A stretch of 64,000 nt of DNA from Fimbriosthenelais zetlandica (Eukaryota), in NCBI GenBank assembly GCA_977030845.1, contig OZ365110.1, forward strand, positions 34,038,001-34,102,000, read 5' to 3'. The position numbers and the translations under genes are program-made. Below the pieces are notes generated by a model. The model did no database searches and was not told the DNA's origin. It worked only from the letters and a program-made list of their open reading frames with translations. This document shows positions 1 to 10,695 of the stretch, one piece after another. Position 1 is the stretch's first letter. Each line of letters opens with the position of its first letter.

Positions 1-139
1 CTGGTCTATAATTGATGGCAATCTGAGACGAGTGCTTTCAATTTCATATAGCGACAAGAACCCATCAATTAAAGTTGGGGGGTTGAGAGTTCACTGGGAG
101 AGATTGGAAGTCCATGGGGTTCCATTCTTCCTCACTTAC

Positions 140-2967
140 TCTGATTTGCTCGCGATCTTTCCCTCAGGTTTTTTTCTCGTTTCTTTTTCCGTGCTAGCAG
201 CATTCTGCGGAGGGTGCCTGGGATGCCGGATCGGTTGTCGGCCATGTCGTAATGTTGTTGCCACGCGTTCTGCACCACGCCTGCGGCTGCGGCAGCCGCG
301 GCAGCTGCCACCGCGGCTTGATGTTGGTGGTTGTGGTAGAGGTTCTGCTGGACAGCCCAGTTACCTGCCACATCATCTTCTAACAGTATCTCGGGTTGGT
401 TATGGTTCAGGAACGCCGCCATGGCGAAGTGGGCGTCATTATTCTCTATATGATCATCACCCATACCTAACGCTTCATCCAGTACCTCCCACTCATTACC
501 ATTATCAGGTAATGCTGGGAAGGCAGCGGGTGGTGCTGGGGGTGCGGCTGGTGCTGGTGCAGGTGCAGCGTTATTCACACCGTTAGGATGAAGAGCTGCA
601 AGGATCTGGTGCTGAAGGCTGAGCACCTGCATGTGAATGTGAAGAGGTGAAGGAGCTCCCAGACTCTCCTCTAACTCCTCTTCATCTTCCTCCTCTTCCT
701 CCTCCTCTGCTTCTAACGCCATGGCATAATCTATCAACAGGGCTTCAGTTTACATCACAATGTCACCCCAGGCATTTATTACACCTCCAAAATTGACATC
801 CAAAACTAATATTTCCTTATTTTTAAAGCCTATCTAGAAATGTATCGGGCTTCAAATATTTAATAAGAAAAATTTATATTTTGATCAATTTTTTAAATGT
901 TCCGCGAGCCCCATGCGAGTTCAAATACACAATAAAGTTGACATTATGCAATATTTAAATGATAAGGTAGTGCGATATTTTCTATTATTACAAGACGTTA
1001 AATGGAATATAAAACTGAAAGCACTTTCTCATAAATCAACCAATATTATTTCTATTTTTTTTTTTTATAAAACACAGATCTAAAGATAAATATCAAAATA
1101 TCTATTTATATTTTTCAATTCTTTAATTTTTTAAGAGCAAAGACCAGCCTCACAAAGATCACTAGAGAAAAACTGCCCAAGTCCCCAAAACCCAGACCTC
1201 AAATATATTACAGGGTTCCCACTAAGTCGATTAAATGAGCTGGGTCAAAAATTCTCCTGCACTTTTCCTGACTATACTCTAAAATTTCCTGACTGTATGC
1301 TTATTAAAACTATGATTCTTTAGTTAACTGTAATTCCAAAAAGAAAAATGATGCCTAAATAATTTAAGTACATAATTATAGTATCGGGCAGAGGAAAGGG
1401 AACTATATTCTGTTTATATTCTGGACCTAGAGGACCTTCTTCGATATAGCACAAGAAAATATTTGGAAACTATTTAACTTATTGATTAATCATGTTGGTT
1501 TCTACAGATTTTTCCAAAATTTGCCCTACCTTCCCTAATCTTTCTAGAATTTCTACTTTTTCTGGACCCGCTTTGAGTGGGGACAGCAATGCAGGCTAGA
1601 CTTTTTCCTGACATGTGGGAACCCTGATATATATATCAATAAAGTTAGTATAATGATTTTAGGAGAATAAAGGGTTACTGAAGTCTGCTGGTACCTGTGT
1701 AGGAGCCATGTTTGGAGTACTTGGTGGCCATGTTACACTCAGCACCGTTATCTAGTAGTATCTGTAGACATGTGAGATGACCATTCTCAGCCGCTAAATG
1801 AACCGCGGTCACATCAAACCGATCACACGAGTCTAACGCAGCTGAAAAATAATAATTTATTATTAAATCGTTTAATAAATGTTGACAAATTAAGCCATTA
1901 TTATACACAATCACCCTACATGAATCGATTTACACAGGAATATATACACCGGTATTTGTAAATTTGGCAGCTGAAAAACAGTCAATTCAATTCAAATTGA
2001 TAAATGATCATAAATCATTTAAAAATCCATTCAAAGATTTTAGTCTAAAGATTCCCTATTGCCATTCGGATTCCAATTTCCAGTACCGGAAGGCTTAATA
2101 AATGGGATAACCATTGATATTGTGATAATCAAAACTCAGTACAAAGTTAGGGTACCAAAAAACCTGTTAATGGTGTAAAAACACCGATCAGATCATCTTT
2201 CAGTCGCAATCATGCATGTACATTAAGTGAGTATATAACCTATTACAGGGTCTACCGTTACGCCTACTTCCTTATTACACTAGCTTACTAATACTATAGT
2301 AGCTACTGGCTTGCATGATTTTAGTTTGGCAGTGTCGGATAATTTTAGAATATCTATTGCACAGGATCCTCAGAAGGATATTTTAATCTACACTATCCGT
2401 TATCAGAATAAGACACATGTTAATATTAGCATATATGAAGATAAATGAAGTGGGACAAAACAGTTTCTAATTATGGACACAGACATTTCATTTGAGACAC
2501 CTTTTGCAAAAATAGTGATAAACAAGGCTAATATTACTAATAAACAGTTCTGATCAATTAAAATCTAACAATTTTCACAGGTCCAGGTTCTTGAAGTATC
2601 CCATACGATTCCCTCTGGATCACTTCCATATGATAGGTATATAGTGATATCTAATTTTCAGTCCTTAACTGTTTAATACACAGAGGATTTAATGTAAAAT
2701 ATGATATTTTTACTCACCTCCTGAATCAATCAACAATTTCAGAACACTGGTTTGTCCTTTGCTGGCAGCACACAGGAGAGGCGTCATGTAATTTTGTGAT
2801 TTATAGAAAAGACTACGATTATAGTCGTCGGCATCCACCGAGGTTCCATCGTTAAGAAGTTGTTCTACCTCCTCCAGGTCTCCTGACAAAGCCGCATCCA
2901 CTAAAGCTTTCCCATTTTCGATCTCTTTTTGAGCTACCGTATGATTACGTTTGGCTTTGAACGCCAT
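140..2967 (-). CDS. Ankyrin-repeat protein with acidic/low-complexity tail; 3' end lies outside the window
   Basis: Exons 2967-2718, 1841-1695 and 730-140 are joined by GT-AG introns with matching phase 1 junctions. Ankyrin-like segments: ALVDAALSGDLEEVEQLLNDG, TPLLCAASKGQTSVLKLLIDSG, TAVHLAAENGHLTCLQILLDNGA. Exon 3 has poly-E, (AP)n and poly-A tracts and ends at a GTAAGT donor at 139. Confidence 0.8.
1211..1626. mobile_element. Non-autonomous DNA transposon (MITE), hAT-like CAGGG termini
   Basis: Perfect 12-bp TIR CAGGGTTCCCAC ... GTGGGAACCCTG. Flanks ATATATTA / ATATATAT resemble a degenerate 8-bp TSD. Confidence 0.7.
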
Positions 2968-3004
2968 GTTGGAAATGAACCACCAAGACGGAGGGCTTCC
3001 CCAG

Positions 3005-3023
3005 TGACGTCACTTTGACGTCA
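3005..3023. promoter_or_regulatory. Two CRE/ATF palindromes in a head-to-head promoter
   Basis: TGACGTCA at 3005-3012 and 3016-3023, within the 245 bp separating the divergent ATGs at 2967 (-) and 3213 (+). Confidence 0.55.
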
Positions 3024-3212
3024 ACACATTAAAACTCTACTATTCGAGCAAAATAAAACACTCTACATTCTTCAATATTCAAATTGTAAATACAAAACAA
3101 TAACGAAGGTGATTAATTCACTTTTACTCGTTTTTGCAGGTTTGGATTCAAAGGGAATCCCCACTTTGGGTGGAGCTCTTCAGCTGTTAGAAGGAGGGAG
3201 AAAAGGACAAAG

Positions 3213-6200
3213 ATGGCGGGTAAACGAGCTCCAAAGACTTACGTGAACTTAGTAAGTTGTCTATTTTTCGTATTGTTACATGATATATACACAAAGAAGT
3301 ATGTCTAACTGCATATTTGAGATCTGTGTTATTTGTTTACCCAAATCATAGTAATGACACCTTGTTTGAAGCTTGAAACTCAGTGAAAATGGTAATGCAA
3401 GGTGCCCTTTTTGCAATTTTGGGGCCTGCTACCATGCTGGCAGTGCTGTGCCTGTGGCTGTGCCAGGCTGTGGGCCTTACTGCCCTTACTTAGTCTTACT
3501 CTTAGGCTAATACTCATAGGGCTTAGGGGGCGACCATAGAATATTGAAAGGGTGGGGTGTTGGGGGCTAGAGTTTTTGTCTGGAAAATATTATTTATTTC
3601 ATAATAGAGATAGAATATGCCATTTATTTCCTAATATATATTTATTTCCACAATCCCTTGACCTTCTGATGTTCTGTCAATTTATTTATTTCATCCATAT
3701 TCTGATTAATTTAATATTTATTTATTTTAAATACAGCCCCCCCCCCCCCCCCAGCCTCAGTAGTTATGCACTTGCCAAAGATAATGTGATTTAGAACTTC
3801 TTTTTGTTGTTTTTGCAGAAATATAAATTTATCCGAGGTTTGATTAATGAGGAGAAATATGAGAGGAAGAAACACTGGATGAAGCATGCAGCCGAGTGGA
3901 CGTCCCGCGCTATCACCACCATGGATCTATCACAGGAGGTGGTGAAAAACGTGAGGCAAGCCACGGCATTAGATGGGGTAGGTGCACATGATCAGGGGAC
4001 GAGATAAGCGACCATTTTCACATGGCCACCGGGCCATTTGATCTCCAAACCAAATGGCCATTGTTAAAATCATATAGGCCGAAAAAGTGCGGTCTATGGT
4101 AATTATCCGAATTTTTAAATGGCAACCGGGCATTTGGTTGGAGAATCAAATGGCCAATCTTAAAATCGTATGGCCTCTGGCCACCGGGCCATCGGCTATT
4201 TCGACCCCTGATGTTAATTAATACTGCTAATTTATATGAGTCAAACTTACTCCTAAATATGTAAAATGTGTATGGTATTAATATTTTCCTGAGTTTACTT
4301 GTGAGACTTCGGCTTCGTATAGACTTACATACCGGCATTCTAAAAAGCTTATGTACAAGATTTATAACGTAGATATTTGATTATTTGTTTTAAATTTATA
4401 ATAAATGTTTATTTTATTTTAGATTGGAGATAAGGCTGGGTTGAAGCTGGGTCGAATATCGGTTGATAAGCGGTTCTCCTCTGACCCGCCCTCGCCGGGA
4501 ATGTTTGTCAGCTCGGCTAGCGCTCTCCTCGTAGCTCTCTACTTCCTTGACAGAGATGCGGAAAATACGGACATGTGAGTCGACCTTAATATTGTTCTTG
4601 AATTTAATATATTTTAAAATCTTTTAGTCTATAACTTGGTGTACGGTACTAAACTGTTTAATGATTCTGAGAAAGTGTTCACTTTATGGAGGTGGGATGT
4701 TCCCTAATCAGAGGGAGTTGTATACTCAAGAACCTGGCACTGATAAAAAGTGTTCACTATATGGAGGTGTTCACTAATGATCTGAAGGAGTCATATACGA
4801 CACCTCAAGAACTTGGGACTGTGAGAAAAAATTGAATTTAATCGTTCTTTTTTAGGCTTGATGGCAGTATGACTCTGATATCAGAGGACGAGCTAAAGCG
4901 ACTGGCGTCCGCCATCTGTGAGGAGAAGTTTGAGGAGACAAGTGAATCTAGTGGAGGTAACAATTAAAATCTTTCCATACCGGACATAGTTTTAAAAGCT
5001 CATACACATTTAAAACTGTTTAAAAATAAAATAATTGTTGCTCGATTTTCACCTATTTGGTTGTTATAAGTTTATTAATTATTAAACATGACATTTTTTG
5101 TTATTTTATTTGTTCAGTTTTCTGTAAGGCATGGTGGCGCCTCACTCTACTCGCCTCACGGGGTTATGTCAAAAAACGAACACGCAACAAAAAACCCGTG
5201 TACCAGTTGTTAGACGAGGGCAAGGAAATGGCTCAGGAACTTTTAGGTGAGAAACGGTTGATTTTCTATAAATTGTTTTTATCATCTATACACCCTTCCT
5301 AATCTTTCACTTTTCTGAAGTGCATGGTGTTCACTAATGAATATTTTACTGTAATAAGTGCAATGAAATTTGTCCAATTTATAATGATGGAATAACAGTG
5401 ATAGAGGTACATTGAATATGGTGATAGGAAAATATAAGAATGAAATTTTATAAATTTTAAAAGGCCTTCAAATATAGGATAAAAATGCCCTGAAAATGTG
5501 TTCAGACTATAATTTGAACCAGTATGTTAGAGAGGGTAAGAATATTGGCTTAAATATATAAGGGGATTTTATTTTTGAAACCCTGAAAATGCAGCTGACC
5601 GAAGCAGAATTTGAACCCATGCCCTTGATGTTACAGAGGGCCGTGGTTTAGACAAGCATAGTGTGCAGGATATACTCGCGGGTCAGCCCGTGGATCAGAA
5701 AGCCGTACAAGCTGCTCCCGAGATGACTGCAGCAGAGCAAGAGCACCTCTATACCAACCATGATGAAACAGATGGGTGAGTACCTAAAGCTACTCTATCA
5801 CTGATCACACTGCTACCAGCAGAGCAAGCGCACCTGTAAATTTACGAACCATGATGAAACGGAGGGGTGAGAGATTACTTAAAGGGACTCTATCACTGAA
5901 ATCTTTCTTGTAATATATCACTATCTGGCGATAGCCTTTCTAATCTATATCTAAAATACTTTGTACAAATAGAATTCCCCAAAACAAAAAGGTATAATTT
6001 CTATGGTTCATAATATCAGGGCTGTTGGTATTTTTAAAGCGAATCTTTCACTGAACATTTCCTTGTCACTACATGTAGGACTTCACTATATATCAATGGC
6101 CTTTTCTAAGATACTTTTTTCATGGAGATTTCCCGAAACCTAAGAGGCCATATATGATTTTTTATGGGACATATGAAGATAGTTGTATTTAAAGCGGCTA

Positions 6201-9022
6201 TGAACTGGTTTTATTGATGTTACAGTGTATTGATGTACGTGGATCTACAGGAAGGTGGGGGTCAGAATAAAGGTCTCAGTGGTATCTGTAGACAGATGCA
6301 GCGTATAGGCGTACGCTACGCTACGCGTCGGCTCGTTACGGGTGACTACAGCTGGGTGTGGGCGTACGGTGGCCAGAAGATAGAGCTACCAATACTGGTG
6401 GAACGAAAACGTGCAGGTAGGTGAAGACTACATTATTATACCCCCAACATGTTATTGATTTGTAATGTCGGGGTGGGGTCCTGGGTCCCCAAGCTGTCTC
6501 CAAATTTGCCTTTGAAGATTTTACTGTCTTTTAATTTTATTATGGATGAGCTTACCCTAATAAAAGATGCAATGTAGTGCAATTTATAGATTACTAACCA
6601 AGAGTTTTTATCTGATTTATCCAGGAGGTATAACCCCCCAACAAGATTATCACAAGGTCCTCGGGATCTAGCCCTGTCTTCCAGGGCCTTCCTGCATTTA
6701 ATACTTGTTGTTCTTTATTAAAAGCCTGGCCACATAAGTAAAAACATGCATAATTTTACAGATGATTTAGCGAAGAGTCTGGTAGATGGACGGTATCAGA
6801 GACAGAAGGAGAAGATGTTAACGTGGGCTAGTAAGTACGCTGAGATCGGCGTAGAGACCGTATTAACGTACCTAGTGGAAGGAGATCCCGCCGCGTACGT
6901 GGTACAATGTGCGGACGGCTGTGGTGGTGTGGGCAGGTGTGGGAACCCCAGCGTCCTACAGTTACAGGTAATTATTGTACAGAAAATAATAATTATTATA
7001 CAATACAGTAGACTCGCACTAATGTGATCACCTATAGGAGACTGCAATATAATAGTAGTATAATGTATGTCCTGTTGCTGCTTATTAAAGTGGCTGTTTT
7101 AAGCGGCTCTATCACTGATCTGTGACGAGTTAAAGCTTATCTATAACTGATATGTGATGAGTATTCAACTTCCCTCTTAAAGCGGCTCTATCACTGATTT
7201 AATCTATCACTTATTTGTGATGAGTATAACTTACCATTTAAAGCTGCTCTATCCCTGATCGGTGATGAGTATTAAACTTCCCACTTAAAGCTACCCTATC
7301 AAAATATAAATGATGTGGTCACTATAGTGAGGTGGTCGTTATGTTTACTATCTATATTCTCTCCTATAGTTGGTGATGAGGGAGCTGTCTGAGAGTTTAG
7401 ATTTCCGGCTGGTTGAGACGTCTAACATCATGGGTACAGTGGACTACCTGGTGTCTGTTACACAGGACCTACAGCGCAGGTATCTCACAACATCATATAC
7501 TTCACAGAAAATGTAGAATCTCAAAAATAGAATAGAATCTCTTCTAGAATCTTTCAGGGTTGAATCTTGGAATGTTGTTTTATTATTTCCAGACAAGAAT
7601 CTGTATTATTTTGTCATTTTCAGGGTAGAATCTGGTGATTTTGATGGTTTACTGAGCCTGGCTGAGAACCTGAAGGATGTACCTGACAATAACGCTACAC
7701 GATCCACTCCCACTAAAAAAACCGCCAAACGTTCTGGGTGAGTCAGCGAAAACAGTCTTTTATCTTTCTAAAAGTTTATCACACTTCGGTTCTTATTTTA
7801 ATCAGTATAACGAAAGAAAATTTGAATCAGAGCCATCAGGTCCTATGTGTGGCAGTTTTTTTTGTGTTTTTTTTGGTGGGGGGGGTGGGGGGGGGGGGGG
7901 GGGGTTTTGTGTGATATGAAAGTATATTATTTGTACCTTTGTCTAATCTTTATGTTCTATTCCAGAAAAAAATCCACCAAGGAGAATGATAAATATATTC
8001 CACCAGAGACCAAGGAGGATGTACGCAGACCGAACACAAAACAGACCCGGAAAAAATACATGTTAACAGAGCTAGCTGTGATGGAGGAAATAACAAGCTC
8101 TGAAGACGACCCAATAGTACTAGATACCACCCCAGATAGGCCCACCTCGAAAAAAAACAAAACATCTAAACATTCTGACACTTCCCGAGTTAAATCTAAA
8201 TCCTCAGGGAAAACGCTGAAAAATGGGGACGCACGGAAACCTTTTTCAGTGGAAAAATCAGAATTTTGGGAAGAAACCGATGAGAAATTCAAGACAAATT
8301 TTCAGGTTGTGTCTCCCGTTAAGAAGGTTAAGAGACGTGTGCACCATATAGACGAGGACTTGTTTGATCTACCGGAATTGGCAAACTTGGCGAATCAAAG
8401 TGAAAATAACAAAAATTGTGTCTCTCCATCTAAACGCCATCGCTGGGGGCCTGTTCCTCACCCCGCCACCTCTACGTCAAACGCTGATGACGTCATACTG
8501 ATAGATTCTCCCCCTAGTGACGTCAAACACGAAATAAAACCAAAGATCGGGATTTTCCCTTCCACTTCCGGTTATGGGAAACTGAAAAATGGAGATTTCA
8601 AAAGTGAAAGTGAAAGTAATGACACGTGGGATGACAGTGATGACGATATAGAGGAACTACCAACATTTGACTCTAATGTACGTCGGGGGAATAGTTTTAG
8701 TGATTCTCCCAAGTACAATCCAAGGAAATATGAAGAAAATGGGGGTTTGGATGATTTTCCAAAATATGATCCGAAAGATTTTGAAAGTCAAGAATATGAC
8801 GATTTGCCGGAGTATGCGGATGGGGGAGGGTTCAGATTGACAGAAGGAAGAAGTGAGGAGAAGGAGGTGGAGGGGACGGGAGAAGAGAAGTGGAAGGATG
8901 AATTAAAGCAGATTAGAGAGATCATTCCTGATGCTGATCTAGAGATCTCAGTCTCCTTACTTGAACATCACCTGGGTAAAGTGGAGAATGTCATATCAAC
9001 ATTCATAGATGAACTCTCATGA
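3213..9022 (+). CDS. MUS81: MUS81-family structure-specific endonuclease: N-terminal HhH-like, winged helix, ERCC4 nuclease, long disordered region, C-terminal CUE-like domain
   Basis: 11 exons in consistent phase: 3213-3251, 3819-3950, 4423-4574, 4856-4956, 5118-5246, 5637-5775, 6226-6416, 6762-6967, 7370-7479, 7624-7737, 7966-9022. ERCC4 motifs VDLQE, GDYSWV and LVERKRADDLAKSLVDGRYQRQK match MUS81 VDxxE, GDFxW and VERKRLDDLxxSIxDGRFxEQK. Orthologue versus paralogue status is not established. Confidence 0.85.
3993..4210. mobile_element. MITE in intron 2 of the MUS81-like gene; same family as 38284-38488
   Basis: TIR CAGGGGACGAGATA ... TATTTCGACCCCTG. The interior is the reverse complement of the copy at 38284-38488. 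Confidence 0.8.
4665..4830. repeat. Dispersed repeat fragment (GTGTTCACTATATGGAGGTG family)
   Basis: The same roughly 85-bp subunit occurs reversed inside the element at 22013-22296 and directly at about 35660-35800. Confidence 0.7.
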
Positions 9023-9552
9023 GAGGCAAACATTCACTGCCGGTATATTGTACAGTTCATATCGGTACAGTATTATGTAAATATTACATATCTTTAGTGG
9101 CAAATGAACTGACAACTCGGTGCTATACTTTTACTACTTTGTATTATTTTCACTTGATGGGAGAGAATTCCCACCTCAGGACCAAAGAAAAGGCATTTTA
9201 TAATTACAGTTTACAAGGATGTACATATTATAATATATGATTACAGCATAAATGATTACACTATTCGATATACCGATAATGTAGAATTTTAATTTGTGAA
9301 ATCCATGTCATTGGTTTCAGGTAAACCTGTGTTGTTATGGTCTTATTATCCAAGTCGGTATACATAATGTAAGATTGTCATGAAATGACTCTCTGGTATT
9401 TTTATTTCAAGACATATTGATTCTGTTTATTCACAGTCATAACATTTTAAATAAGTTTGTTCAAGCTGGGATTATCACAGTAAGTGGTAGTATTGTAATT
9501 TTTCCCTGTACATTTTTAGCTTCACTCTTGCTCTCTTACTGCCAATGCACTG

Positions 9553-9735
9553 GACTCTTAAAGTCTATGTTTGGCCTTCAAGTTTAAAGTCGATTTTGGG
9601 ACTCTAAGTTTAAAGTCTATGTTTATACTCTAAGCTTAAAATGTTTATACTCTAAGCTTGAAGTCTATGTTTGGACTCTAAACTTGAAGTCTATGTTTGG
9701 ACTCTAAGCTTAATATGTTTTAAGTTTATAGTCTA
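9553..9735. repeat. Minisatellite, about 26-bp unit (ACTCTAAGCTTGAAGTCTATGTTTGG), overlapping a stop codon
   Basis: About 6-7 degenerate copies. The rightmost copy includes the last codons and TAA of the minus-strand membrane-protein gene. Confidence 0.8.
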
Positions 9736-10695
9736 TGGTTGGGGTCTGGTTCGTCCATCCCTCCGTCTGTCTCATCTCGTTCTTGTCTTTTCGCCATTTT
9801 CTCCTTCAGTCGCTTTTCTTCCTGCCGTACTCTGTATTTAGAACAAAAATTATTTAAAGATATTTTTACGAAAACATCAACCCCAATATTTATCTTTCCA
9901 TTCCACATCATAGAATAAAGTACTTCCTTTGTTGCGGTGAGGAAAAAATCATTCCAAAAATAAAAACAATCCCAAGTAGTTATCCGTAATTTAGATACAG
10001 CTTTCTTTATGATACGGTAATGATTATCCTACCTACAGATTCCCACGACCACAGTCACCACGAAAACTAACCCAGCAAAAGCTGAAGTCACACCGATAAT
10101 AATATAGTCTGTGGTGTTAAAGCCCGTCTTTGGTCCATTTGTAGGCTCCTGGACGTTGGCATAAAGTTTTCTGAAATCATTAGATTGTCAAGTTTGTATT
10201 CTTTCATCAGATTAACCCACAGTGGTGTTCTTGCTGCCATGTTTAAAATCTGATTTGGCGTGTAGATCTGTCCAGGTAAAATAATTTGGTTTGCTTCGAT
10301 GTTATACAATTTAGCCTGAGAATTGGGTCACTGCATATGCATATGCACATGTCAATATAATTTCGTTTTGAGTGAGACCAATTTATATCTTGGCATGGTG
10401 TAATATACCAGGTATAATATTTTACTACTTCTGTTTGCTCTTCCATGACAGGCTATTTCAAATAAACTAGTATTATGACTGAAATATTCGAACCGTGGAT
10501 CTTTTACCTTTGCCTTAATGATACAATGTCTATAGTATACCTTACTAGAGTACCTAATATAGGAGACTCAATCGTAATTAATTTTACTTACGGTTTCTCT
10601 GGAGAACGTTCAGCCGTTACGAAACATAAACATTGTAATAAAAGGATAAAGATTATCCCAAAATGTTTCAAACTGGATACGAAAATGCCTTCCAT
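9726..10695 (-). CDS. Small single-pass type I membrane protein (115 aa), family unknown
   Basis: Exons 10695-10592, 10170-10033 and 9831-9726 have GT-AG introns with matching phase 2 junctions. Translation: MEGIFVSSLKHFGIIFILLLQCLCFVTA (signal peptide), ERSPEKPKLYANVQEPTNGPKTGFNTTDY, IIIGVTSAFAGLVFVVTVVVGIC (TM), RVRQEEKRLKEKMAKRQERDETDGGMDEPDPNHRL*. A probable 5'UTR exon has its donor at 11476. Confidence 0.75.

Follow-up and report, generated by a model that had tools for sequence, protein, structure and literature searches.

The stretch of DNA analysed here, in the following called the window, comprises 64,000 nucleotides of the genome of Fimbriosthenelais zetlandica (assembly GCA_977030845.1, contig OZ365110.1, positions 34,038,001 to 34,102,000 of the forward strand). 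On its plus strand, from position 3213 to 9022, lies a gene of the MUS81 type, the exons of which were assembled by splice signals within positions 1-10200. The resulting model consists of 11 exons and encodes 798 amino acids. All ten introns have GT..AG borders, their phases are consistent, and the reading frame remains intact throughout the 11 exons. A genome-wide search showed that the gene is present as a single copy in the source genome, and the same holds true for its tail exon.

Exon 1 (3213-3251) carries the start codon (MAGKRAPKTYVNL), an ATG after which a GTAAGT donor follows. Exons 2 (3819-3977) and 3 (4423-4574) encode the N-terminal region, exons 4 (4856-4956) and 5 (5118-5246) a winged-helix-like region, and exon 6 (5637-5775) a linker. 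The ERCC4 nuclease domain has its first half in exon 7 (6226-6416), while exon 8 (6762-6967) comprises its second part (DDLAKSLVDGRYQRQK and YLVEGD) as well as a cysteine motif, CADGCGGVGRCGNP. Exons 9 (7370-7479) and 10 (7624-7737) complete the nuclease domain and add a linker; they encode DFRLVETSNI and GDFDGLLSLAENL. Finally, exon 11 (7966-9022) contributes 351 residues, composed of a low-complexity tail up to position 8896 and a CUE-like domain with the stop codon at 8897-9022.

At the junction of exons 10 and 11 (7737/7966), the donor is a perfect GTGAGT, the AG acceptor is rich in pyrimidines, and the phase is correct. A retention of intron 10 would lead to an immediate stop, caused by the TGA within the GTGAGT donor. 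Exon 11 sits inside an open frame of 391 codons at a guanine plus cytosine (GC) content of 38%. Since this length far exceeds the one expected by chance at such a GC content, the open frame is not a chance product.

Nuclease core and N-terminal parts

The catalytic residues of the nuclease domain are complete, comprising VDLQE (6239-6253), GDYSW (6341-6355) and ERKRADD (6401-6766), the latter being split by an intron. In Pfam, the ERCC4 family (PF02732) was matched by exon 7 with 23.8 bits at profile positions 8-56 and by exon 8 with 15.8 bits at positions 58-91, so that the two matches are contiguous in the profile. Since the domain was searched one exon at a time, each exon taken alone lies at or below the cut-off of 24 bits. 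The weak scores of the matches to the MUS81 subfamily can likewise be explained by the use of single exons as queries. Among the five matches listed for exon 7 in a search of PDB sequences, the best four were MUS81 nuclease domains (E 0.05-0.3). When the whole model was compared by tblastn with two stretches of the source genome, the one on contig C11, which contains the canonical MUS81 described below, was matched at IVERKRMDDLAGSIQDGRFKEQK (E 1.5e-4), a match that falls on exon 8, and no match was obtained with the stretch on contig C10, which holds the strongest ERCC4 match of the genome. Judged from these comparisons, the nuclease domain is nearer to MUS81 than to XPF, EME1 or FANCM.

Directly after YLVEGD, at 6908-6949, the nuclease domain contains the insert CADGCGGVxxCGxP, with a cysteine spacing of C-x3-C-x5-C. 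It is invariant in all four sequences of the paralogue available from the window and from foreign contigs (see below), and it was not seen in canonical MUS81. The three cysteines could form a metal-binding or a disulphide knuckle. Standard domain searches under-detect the family. The insert provides a convenient signature for locating its members.

Towards the N-terminus, a helix-hairpin-helix (HhH)-like motif, ALDGIGDKAGLKLG, straddles the junction of exons 2 and 3 (3966-4452). This motif was identified by eye only, and it was detected neither by Pfam on single exons nor by a genome scan with PF14716 nor by a phmmer search of the PDB. The winged-helix-like region of exons 4 and 5 reads AWWRLTLLASRGYVKK...YQLLDEGKEMA. 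Here, exon 5 was matched best by winged-helix chains of AspA among PDB sequences (E 0.02), and by eye it resembles its winged-helix counterpart in the canonical MUS81 (C11). The profile of the MUS81 winged helix (PF21136) had no match in the window, neither in the genome scan nor on single exons.

An earlier reading of the window, made from the letters alone (the sequence-only reading), had described a MUS81-like nuclease at 7370-9022. This span includes exons 9-11 and not the catalytic residues, which lie upstream in exons 7 and 8 (6226-6967). The same reading had reported an ERCC4 domain with intact VDLQE, GDY, ERK and DD, followed by about 350 residues of disordered sequence, and both statements are borne out, the former by the Pfam matches and the residues themselves and the latter by the 351 residues of exon 11, which are of low complexity and in which all of the quoted SIM-like (SUMO-interacting motif) and C-terminal strings are present.

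Canonical MUS81, EME1 and relatives of the window gene

Genome-wide profile scans revealed a canonical MUS81 on C11, the four exons of which lie on the minus strand in the right order within approximately 34 kb. These are an HHH_8-like exon at 49841130, found by the genome profile scan, the MUS81 winged-helix exon at 49839255 (26.2 bits), an ERCC4 exon at 49834872 (28.5 bits), which reads GDFAWI and ERKRMDD, and an exon with the MUS81/EME1 C-terminal region at 49807116 (SLFEAYQQCTTEQEAENLVSEIKFGTLGR; PF21292, 20 bits). In addition, a homologue of EME1 was found on contig C19 as an open frame of 346 residues, which matches PF21292 with 89 bits. This EME1 (C19:15927100-15928142, minus strand) consists of one uninterrupted open frame and may either be intronless or comprise a large last exon.

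PF21292 describes the tandem HhH domain, (HhH)2, at the C-terminus of these proteins, and in the genome-wide scan its matches were confined to the EME1 on C19 and the canonical MUS81 on C11. In the window, no match to PF21292 was found, and a tblastn search with the C-termini from C11 and C19 yielded noise only. The two genes also differ in their exon structure: while the canonical ERCC4 exon on C11 reads uninterrupted through the position ERKRA|DD, the window gene has an intron there. Altogether, the window gene is supported as a MUS81-type paralogue without the C-terminal (HhH)2. Since a canonical MUS81 and an EME1 are present at other places of the same genome, it is not the ordinary MUS81 of the clade, a possibility which the sequence-only reading had itself raised and which is excluded by the canonical gene with its C-terminal HhH on C11. 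The proposals of a paralogue and of a missing tandem HhH, both part of that reading, are therefore supported by the second, canonical MUS81 and the EME1, and by the PF21292 scan together with the tblastn search using the C-termini of the same genome.

Relatives of the window gene were found on three foreign contigs. A word-index search with exon 8 returned two fragments, P0002 from a Logan assembly (contig L020) with 75% identity and P0003, an ENA metagenome fragment (contig L021), with 66% identity. L020 also holds exon 7 (67% identity), in which VDIQE, GDYSW and ERKRA are kept. A third contig, L022 (5437 bp, GC content of 50%), was found by a metagenome scan with a three-sequence alignment of exon 8 from the window, L020 and L021, and its exon 8 is 53% identical to that of the window. 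L022 further holds the winged-helix exon, the region of which is kept with 55% identity, a split exon 7 (FDTQE...GDYIW...ERKRA, with ERKRADD spliced) and downstream exons. For the nuclease part, the identity of L022 and the window amounts to 42% (70/168), and the Pfam scores of the L022 exons for ERCC4 were 24.7 and 15 bits. By eye, GFELVQTNNL of L022 appears as the counterpart of DFRLVETSNI. The cysteine motif is located at 3550-3600 in L022 and is also present in L020 and L021, and the intron position ERKRA|DD is kept wherever a foreign contig covers it.

The catalytic residues are kept in the orthologues, with values of 0.19-0.39 for the nonsynonymous divergence (dN) and a saturated synonymous divergence (dS). 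Since dN remains this low while dS is saturated, the gene is old and has been under purifying selection for a long time. When genomes of bacteria and archaea were scanned with the alignment of exon 8, no match was obtained, and a look-up of the exact products of two L022 frames found none on record. To keep the frame of L022 open, its model has to assume GT..AG introns of only 40 nucleotides (4401-4440) and 45 nucleotides (4675-4719) beside introns of 94-495 nucleotides, which points either to a host with unusually small introns or to indel errors in the contig.

The tail and its C-terminal end

Without its last 45 residues, the tail is composed of 21% D/E, 17% K/R and 37% S/T/P/G/N/Q, and exon 11 as a whole is rich in K, E, S and D. 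Judged from this composition and from low values of the predicted local distance difference test (pLDDT), the tail is inferred to be disordered. Several short motifs can be read in it. The first SIM-like motif, SSEDDPIVLDTT, is located at 8096-8131, and its core PIVLD nearly fits the SIM pattern, which was defined as an aliphatic core of 3-4 residues (V/I/L) with acidic or phosphorylatable flanks. A basic cluster, KKVKRRVHH, follows at 8321-8347. The second SIM-like motif, ADDVILIDSPP at 8483-8515, fits the pattern with VILID and the adjacent SPP. Further downstream are KIGIFPSTS at 8543-8569 and repeats of the type PKY[ND]P at 8708-8833.

No homologue of the tail was found among 1.84 billion representative sequences, and word-index searches were equally negative, both for the entire tail and for the final 100 residues as queries. 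The sole match in the representative library, a repeat-rich, tail-fibre-like protein of 1843 residues, was rejected as spurious. Downstream of the nuclease exons of L022, the same strand carries a frame rich in serine and acidic residues, which contains VTIMDSPP, CIDLT with serine and acidic residues, VVITGVDD and LVDITDE and which ends with KLIRGIFPGLSDADV... (KLIRGIFP...DADV). The best ungapped 10-mer shared by the two tails pairs DDVILIDSPP of the window with DHVTIMDSPP of L022 at a score of 35, compared to 26±3 for shuffles (p 0.01), a value that has to be discounted about threefold, since the L022 frame was partly chosen for its VTIMDSPP motif. At least one short motif of the SIM type with the adjacent SPP is probably conserved, while the remaining SIM-like strings may be due to chance.

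Two further observations were made in this part of the tail. The repeats at 8708-8833 comprise three loose copies of the form P-K/E-Y-[ND/A]-P/D, namely SPKYNPRKYEE, FPKYDPKDFES and LPEYADGGGF, which may represent a repeated docking motif. KIGIFPSTS, which lies 11 residues past VILIDSPP, echoes LIRGIFPGLS, with which the C-terminal domain of L022 begins (4990-5020, after LVDITDE). The echo may be a trace left by an internally duplicated first helix, or it may have arisen by chance.

The last 45 residues (DELKQIREIIPDADLEISVSLLEHHLGKVENVISTFIDELS, 8897-9022 including the stop codon) were compared with CUE domains by Pfam, by PDB sequences and by a profile from the same genome. For this tight piece, CUE (PF02845) was the sole family listed by Pfam (E 0.1), where it covers positions 3-36 of a profile of 42 with 12.7 bits, below the gathering score of 21.1. 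With the whole tail or a piece of 64 residues as queries, Pfam gave no CUE match. In a phmmer search of the PDB with the 45 residues, the CUE domain of Tollip (1wgl) was the only match in a single stretch (E 0.64), which is in register and aligns IIP of the window to MFP. Neighbours of the C-terminus in the feature space of a language model all belonged to clusters of the UBA/CUE clan, with a score of 0.83 that is taken as a lead only.

For the profile from the same genome, six CUE domains that pass Pfam were used to build a hidden Markov model (HMM). The C-terminus of the window reached 13.2 bits with this model, and none of 2000 composition-matched shuffles attained this value, their maximum being 6.7. 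An alignment of the C-terminus with the same profile by hhalign comprised 36 columns with a probability of 72.7% and a P of 3.2e-5. These sequence comparisons suggest that the C-terminus is rather probably a divergent CUE-type domain. At the motif position, the CUE domains of this genome read MFP, VFP, LLP, ILP and VVP, compared to IIP in the window. Domains with LLP, ILP or VVP that pass Pfam are those at C1:41985364, C27:25543685 and C29:7613956 (L030-L032). Two of these stretches, L030 and L031, lie on different contigs and are nearly identical to each other. Since genuine CUE domains of the same genome carry LLP, ILP and VVP, IIP is within the normal range of the family, and the suggestion of the sequence-only reading that IIP instead of MFP implies another ligand is unwarranted.

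Regarding the surroundings of the gene, a divergent gene on the minus strand begins at about 2966, roughly 250 bp from exon 1, and the next gene on the 3' side is convergent with its stop at 9726, as had been noted before. Much of the gap of 700 nucleotides between the convergent stops (9022/9726) is occupied by a tandem repeat of 26 nucleotides with 6.2 copies (9557-9713), and within 9023-9800 no AATAAA or ATTAAA signal was found. The introns also contain repeated sequence. About 90 nucleotides downstream of the 3' part of exon 6 and its donor (5730-5804), intron 6 contains a second copy of this sequence (5817-5899) with 81-91% identity. Since the copy has an in-frame stop, it represents a dead pseudo-exon or might act as a decoy donor. 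A short element, TTAAAGCNGCTCTATCACTGA, occurs in seven copies in introns 6 and 8 (5773-6054 and 7076-7301), some of them as units of approximately 60-110 nucleotides, and probably belongs to a small repeat family of the source genome. In intron 10, just upstream of the tail exon, a tract of about 29 nucleotides at 7875-7903 consists almost entirely of G (GGTGGGGGG x 3.2), which is a potential G-quadruplex or a potential weak point of the assembly.

Possible explanations and known systems

Members of the XPF/MUS81 family work as dimers held together by both the nuclease domain and (HhH)2, and they are recruited via scaffolds such as SLX4. In canonical MUS81, the C-terminal (HhH)2 pairs with EME1/Mms4, of which human and zebrafish MUS81-EME1 structures exist (4p0p, 2ziu). 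SLX4 is a scaffold with SIMs and ubiquitin-binding UBZ4 fingers, which targets XPF, MUS81 and SLX1. Nucleases with ubiquitin readers of their own are FAN1 (UBZ and VRR-NUC) and Cue2/N4BP2 (CUE and SMR nuclease). To our knowledge, all characterised eukaryotic members of the XPF/MUS81 family (XPF, ERCC1, MUS81, EME1/2, FANCM, FAAP24) keep a nuclease-like domain together with the C-terminal (HhH)2.

The best explanation of the data as a whole, which we give a slightly better than even chance, is an old duplicate of MUS81, predicted to be catalytically competent, that lacks (HhH)2 and carries a tail with SIM motifs and a CUE-type end. According to this explanation, MUS81 would have been duplicated long ago and the copy retained by purifying selection in several species. 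The product would be a structure-selective endonuclease of the MUS81 lineage, its predicted competence following from the complete ERCC4 active site, and it would have kept the N-terminal DNA-binding parts of MUS81 in the form of the HhH-like motif and the winged-helix-like region. The C-terminal (HhH)2, which canonical MUS81 uses for the pairing with EME1 and for holding DNA, would have been lost. In turn, the nuclease domain would have acquired the conserved insert with three cysteines, and the protein a disordered tail that evolves fast, with at least one conserved SIM-type motif (an aliphatic core with D and SPP) and a divergent CUE-type end. By analogy, the tail might anchor the nuclease where DNA is damaged or stalled, on chromatin proteins that carry ubiquitin and/or SUMO. 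We infer such a recruitment because XPF-family dimers, the SIMs and UBZs of SLX4, FAN1 and Cue2 are known. One polypeptide would then possess targeting of the kind which SLX4 gives to canonical MUS81-EME1. The cutting form could be a homodimer, a complex with EME1 via the interface of the nuclease domains alone, or a complex with another partner.

The main rival explanation accepts the same paralogue and differs in its tail, which would be no reader of SUMO or ubiquitin. Instead, the C-terminal hairpin would take over the pairing role of (HhH)2 as a module for dimerisation or docking, and the SIM-like strings would be chance products in a disordered, phosphorylated linker. It draws on most of the following results, which weigh against the preferred explanation. 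For the last 50 residues, AlphaFold without an alignment predicted a hairpin of two long helices (pLDDT 79) compared to the three-helix bundle of CUE domains, while the prediction for the last 92 residues was poor (pLDDT 63). A Foldseek search of the PDB with the C-terminal models found no match at all, and thus none to CUE or UBA, and a wide structural search returned only generic helical hairpins with Z scores of 5 or below, among which dimerisation/docking domains of protein kinase A came first. The C-terminus of L022 is not recognised as CUE by Pfam, by phmmer against the PDB or by the CUE HMM of the source genome, and the Pfam score of the window domain itself stays below the gathering score. 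Compared to composition-matched shuffles, the number of SIM-like motifs in the tail is not enriched (p 0.3-0.5), so that an enrichment was rejected, and the likeness of the window tail and the L022 tail as wholes is not significant. Moreover, XPF-family nucleases are obligate dimers, so that a lost (HhH)2 would have to be replaced by another module.

Against a dimerisation module, the sequence tests point specifically to CUE and in full register for the domain of the window, the fold matches do not rise above the background for helical models, and one SIM-like motif is conserved. The C-terminus of L022 resembles that of the window (Smith-Waterman p 0.026). A complex prediction of the C-terminal 50 residues with ubiquitin of the same genome (score 0.29, mark 0.34) carries no weight either way. 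We regard the dimerisation module as a doubtful possibility, though a considerable one. For the claims made from the letters alone this means that the CUE-like ending is retained on the basis of several weak, concordant sequence tests, with the Pfam gathering score not reached and two predicted helices in place of three. Both SIM-like strings are present and VILIDSPP recurs in L022 as VTIMDSPP, and their count does not exceed that of shuffled sequences. The independence from EME1 and the binding of SUMO or ubiquitin, also put forward in that reading, are hypothetical.

A further explanation concerns the 3' part of the model. The join of exons 10 and 11 is based on the splice signals, the phase and the parallel layout of L022, and the 3' model of L022 with its introns of 40 and 45 nucleotides was partly picked because it resembles the window, so that conservation appears higher than it is; both points add to the doubts about the preferred explanation. 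The nuclease could thus end after exon 10, with the frame of 351 codons belonging to a separate or alternative transcript. This would fit the stop directly at the donor, the tail without a homologue in large protein libraries, and a search for RNA sequencing runs in which none were listed. It is opposed by the strong donor and acceptor in the correct phase, by the distance of just 228 nucleotides between the exons together with the lack of a start codon where the tail frame opens, and by L022, in which nuclease exons, a frame rich in serine and acidic residues and a similar C-terminus follow each other in the same order on the same strand. Such an early end is considered improbable. The view of the gene as a duplicate in decay (pseudogene), or as no more than the MUS81 ordinarily found in the clade, for which nothing specific speaks apart from the modest Pfam scores per exon, is largely refuted and hardly credible in view of the intact frame over 11 exons, the catalytic residues kept in four species at saturated synonymous sites, and the canonical MUS81 and EME1 elsewhere in the same genome.

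A comparison with the known systems underlines the unusual layout of the protein. Like MUS81, to which it is closest by sequence, it has an ERCC4 domain with GDxW...ERKRxDD, and its HhH-like N-terminal motif and winged-helix-like region would follow the order of MUS81. Unlike MUS81, it comprises no C-terminal (HhH)2 and instead shows the CADGCGGVxxCGxP insert, the intron at ERKRA|DD, the tail of 351 residues and the CUE-like end. With SLX4 it would share a long disordered region that is tied to a structure-selective nuclease and contains motifs of the SIM type as well as a putative module for ubiquitin binding. However, the candidate modules of the window are located on the polypeptide of the nuclease itself and include a CUE-like domain in place of UBZ, so that the likeness is one of layout and no homology is claimed. 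Compared to the CUE domain of Tollip (1wgl), the C-terminus is similar in its length of about 40 residues, its helical nature, 34-36 positions in register, and the xxP motif with a C-terminal hydrophobic pair. It deviates from a textbook CUE domain by its score below the cut-off, by IIP and FI where CUE has MFP and LL, and by the two-helix model. A nuclease recruited by a ubiquitin-binding domain of its own chain, as would be the case in the window gene, is known from FAN1 and Cue2/N4BP2, which serve as an analogy only, since their nuclease folds (VRR-NUC, SMR) are unrelated and their substrates different.

A search of the literature found no paper on an animal MUS81 paralogue of this layout, which is unusual and looks undescribed, and no relevant paper with the accessions of the foreign contigs. 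The family may already carry automatic annotations somewhere, a further point to be held against the preferred explanation. An extended form of that explanation would describe a self-targeting, structure-selective endonuclease with a MUS81 catalytic core that is conserved in several animal lineages, needs no (HhH)2/EME1 pairing any longer, directly recognises ubiquitin and SUMO marks with a CUE-type domain and a phospho-regulated SIM of its own, contains the possibly metal-binding three-cysteine insert and represents a seventh functional type of the XPF/MUS81 family. As a whole this is unlikely. If true, it would constitute a self-targeting type that is absent from the vertebrate and yeast models.

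Read from its sequence, the window gene is a real, conserved and unusual variant of a known nuclease family. It raises the question of whether an ERCC4 nuclease can work without the HhH pairing module, and the question of whether SUMO/ubiquitin targeting, which is normally provided in trans, can be built into the nuclease. Both questions are approachable with recombinant protein.

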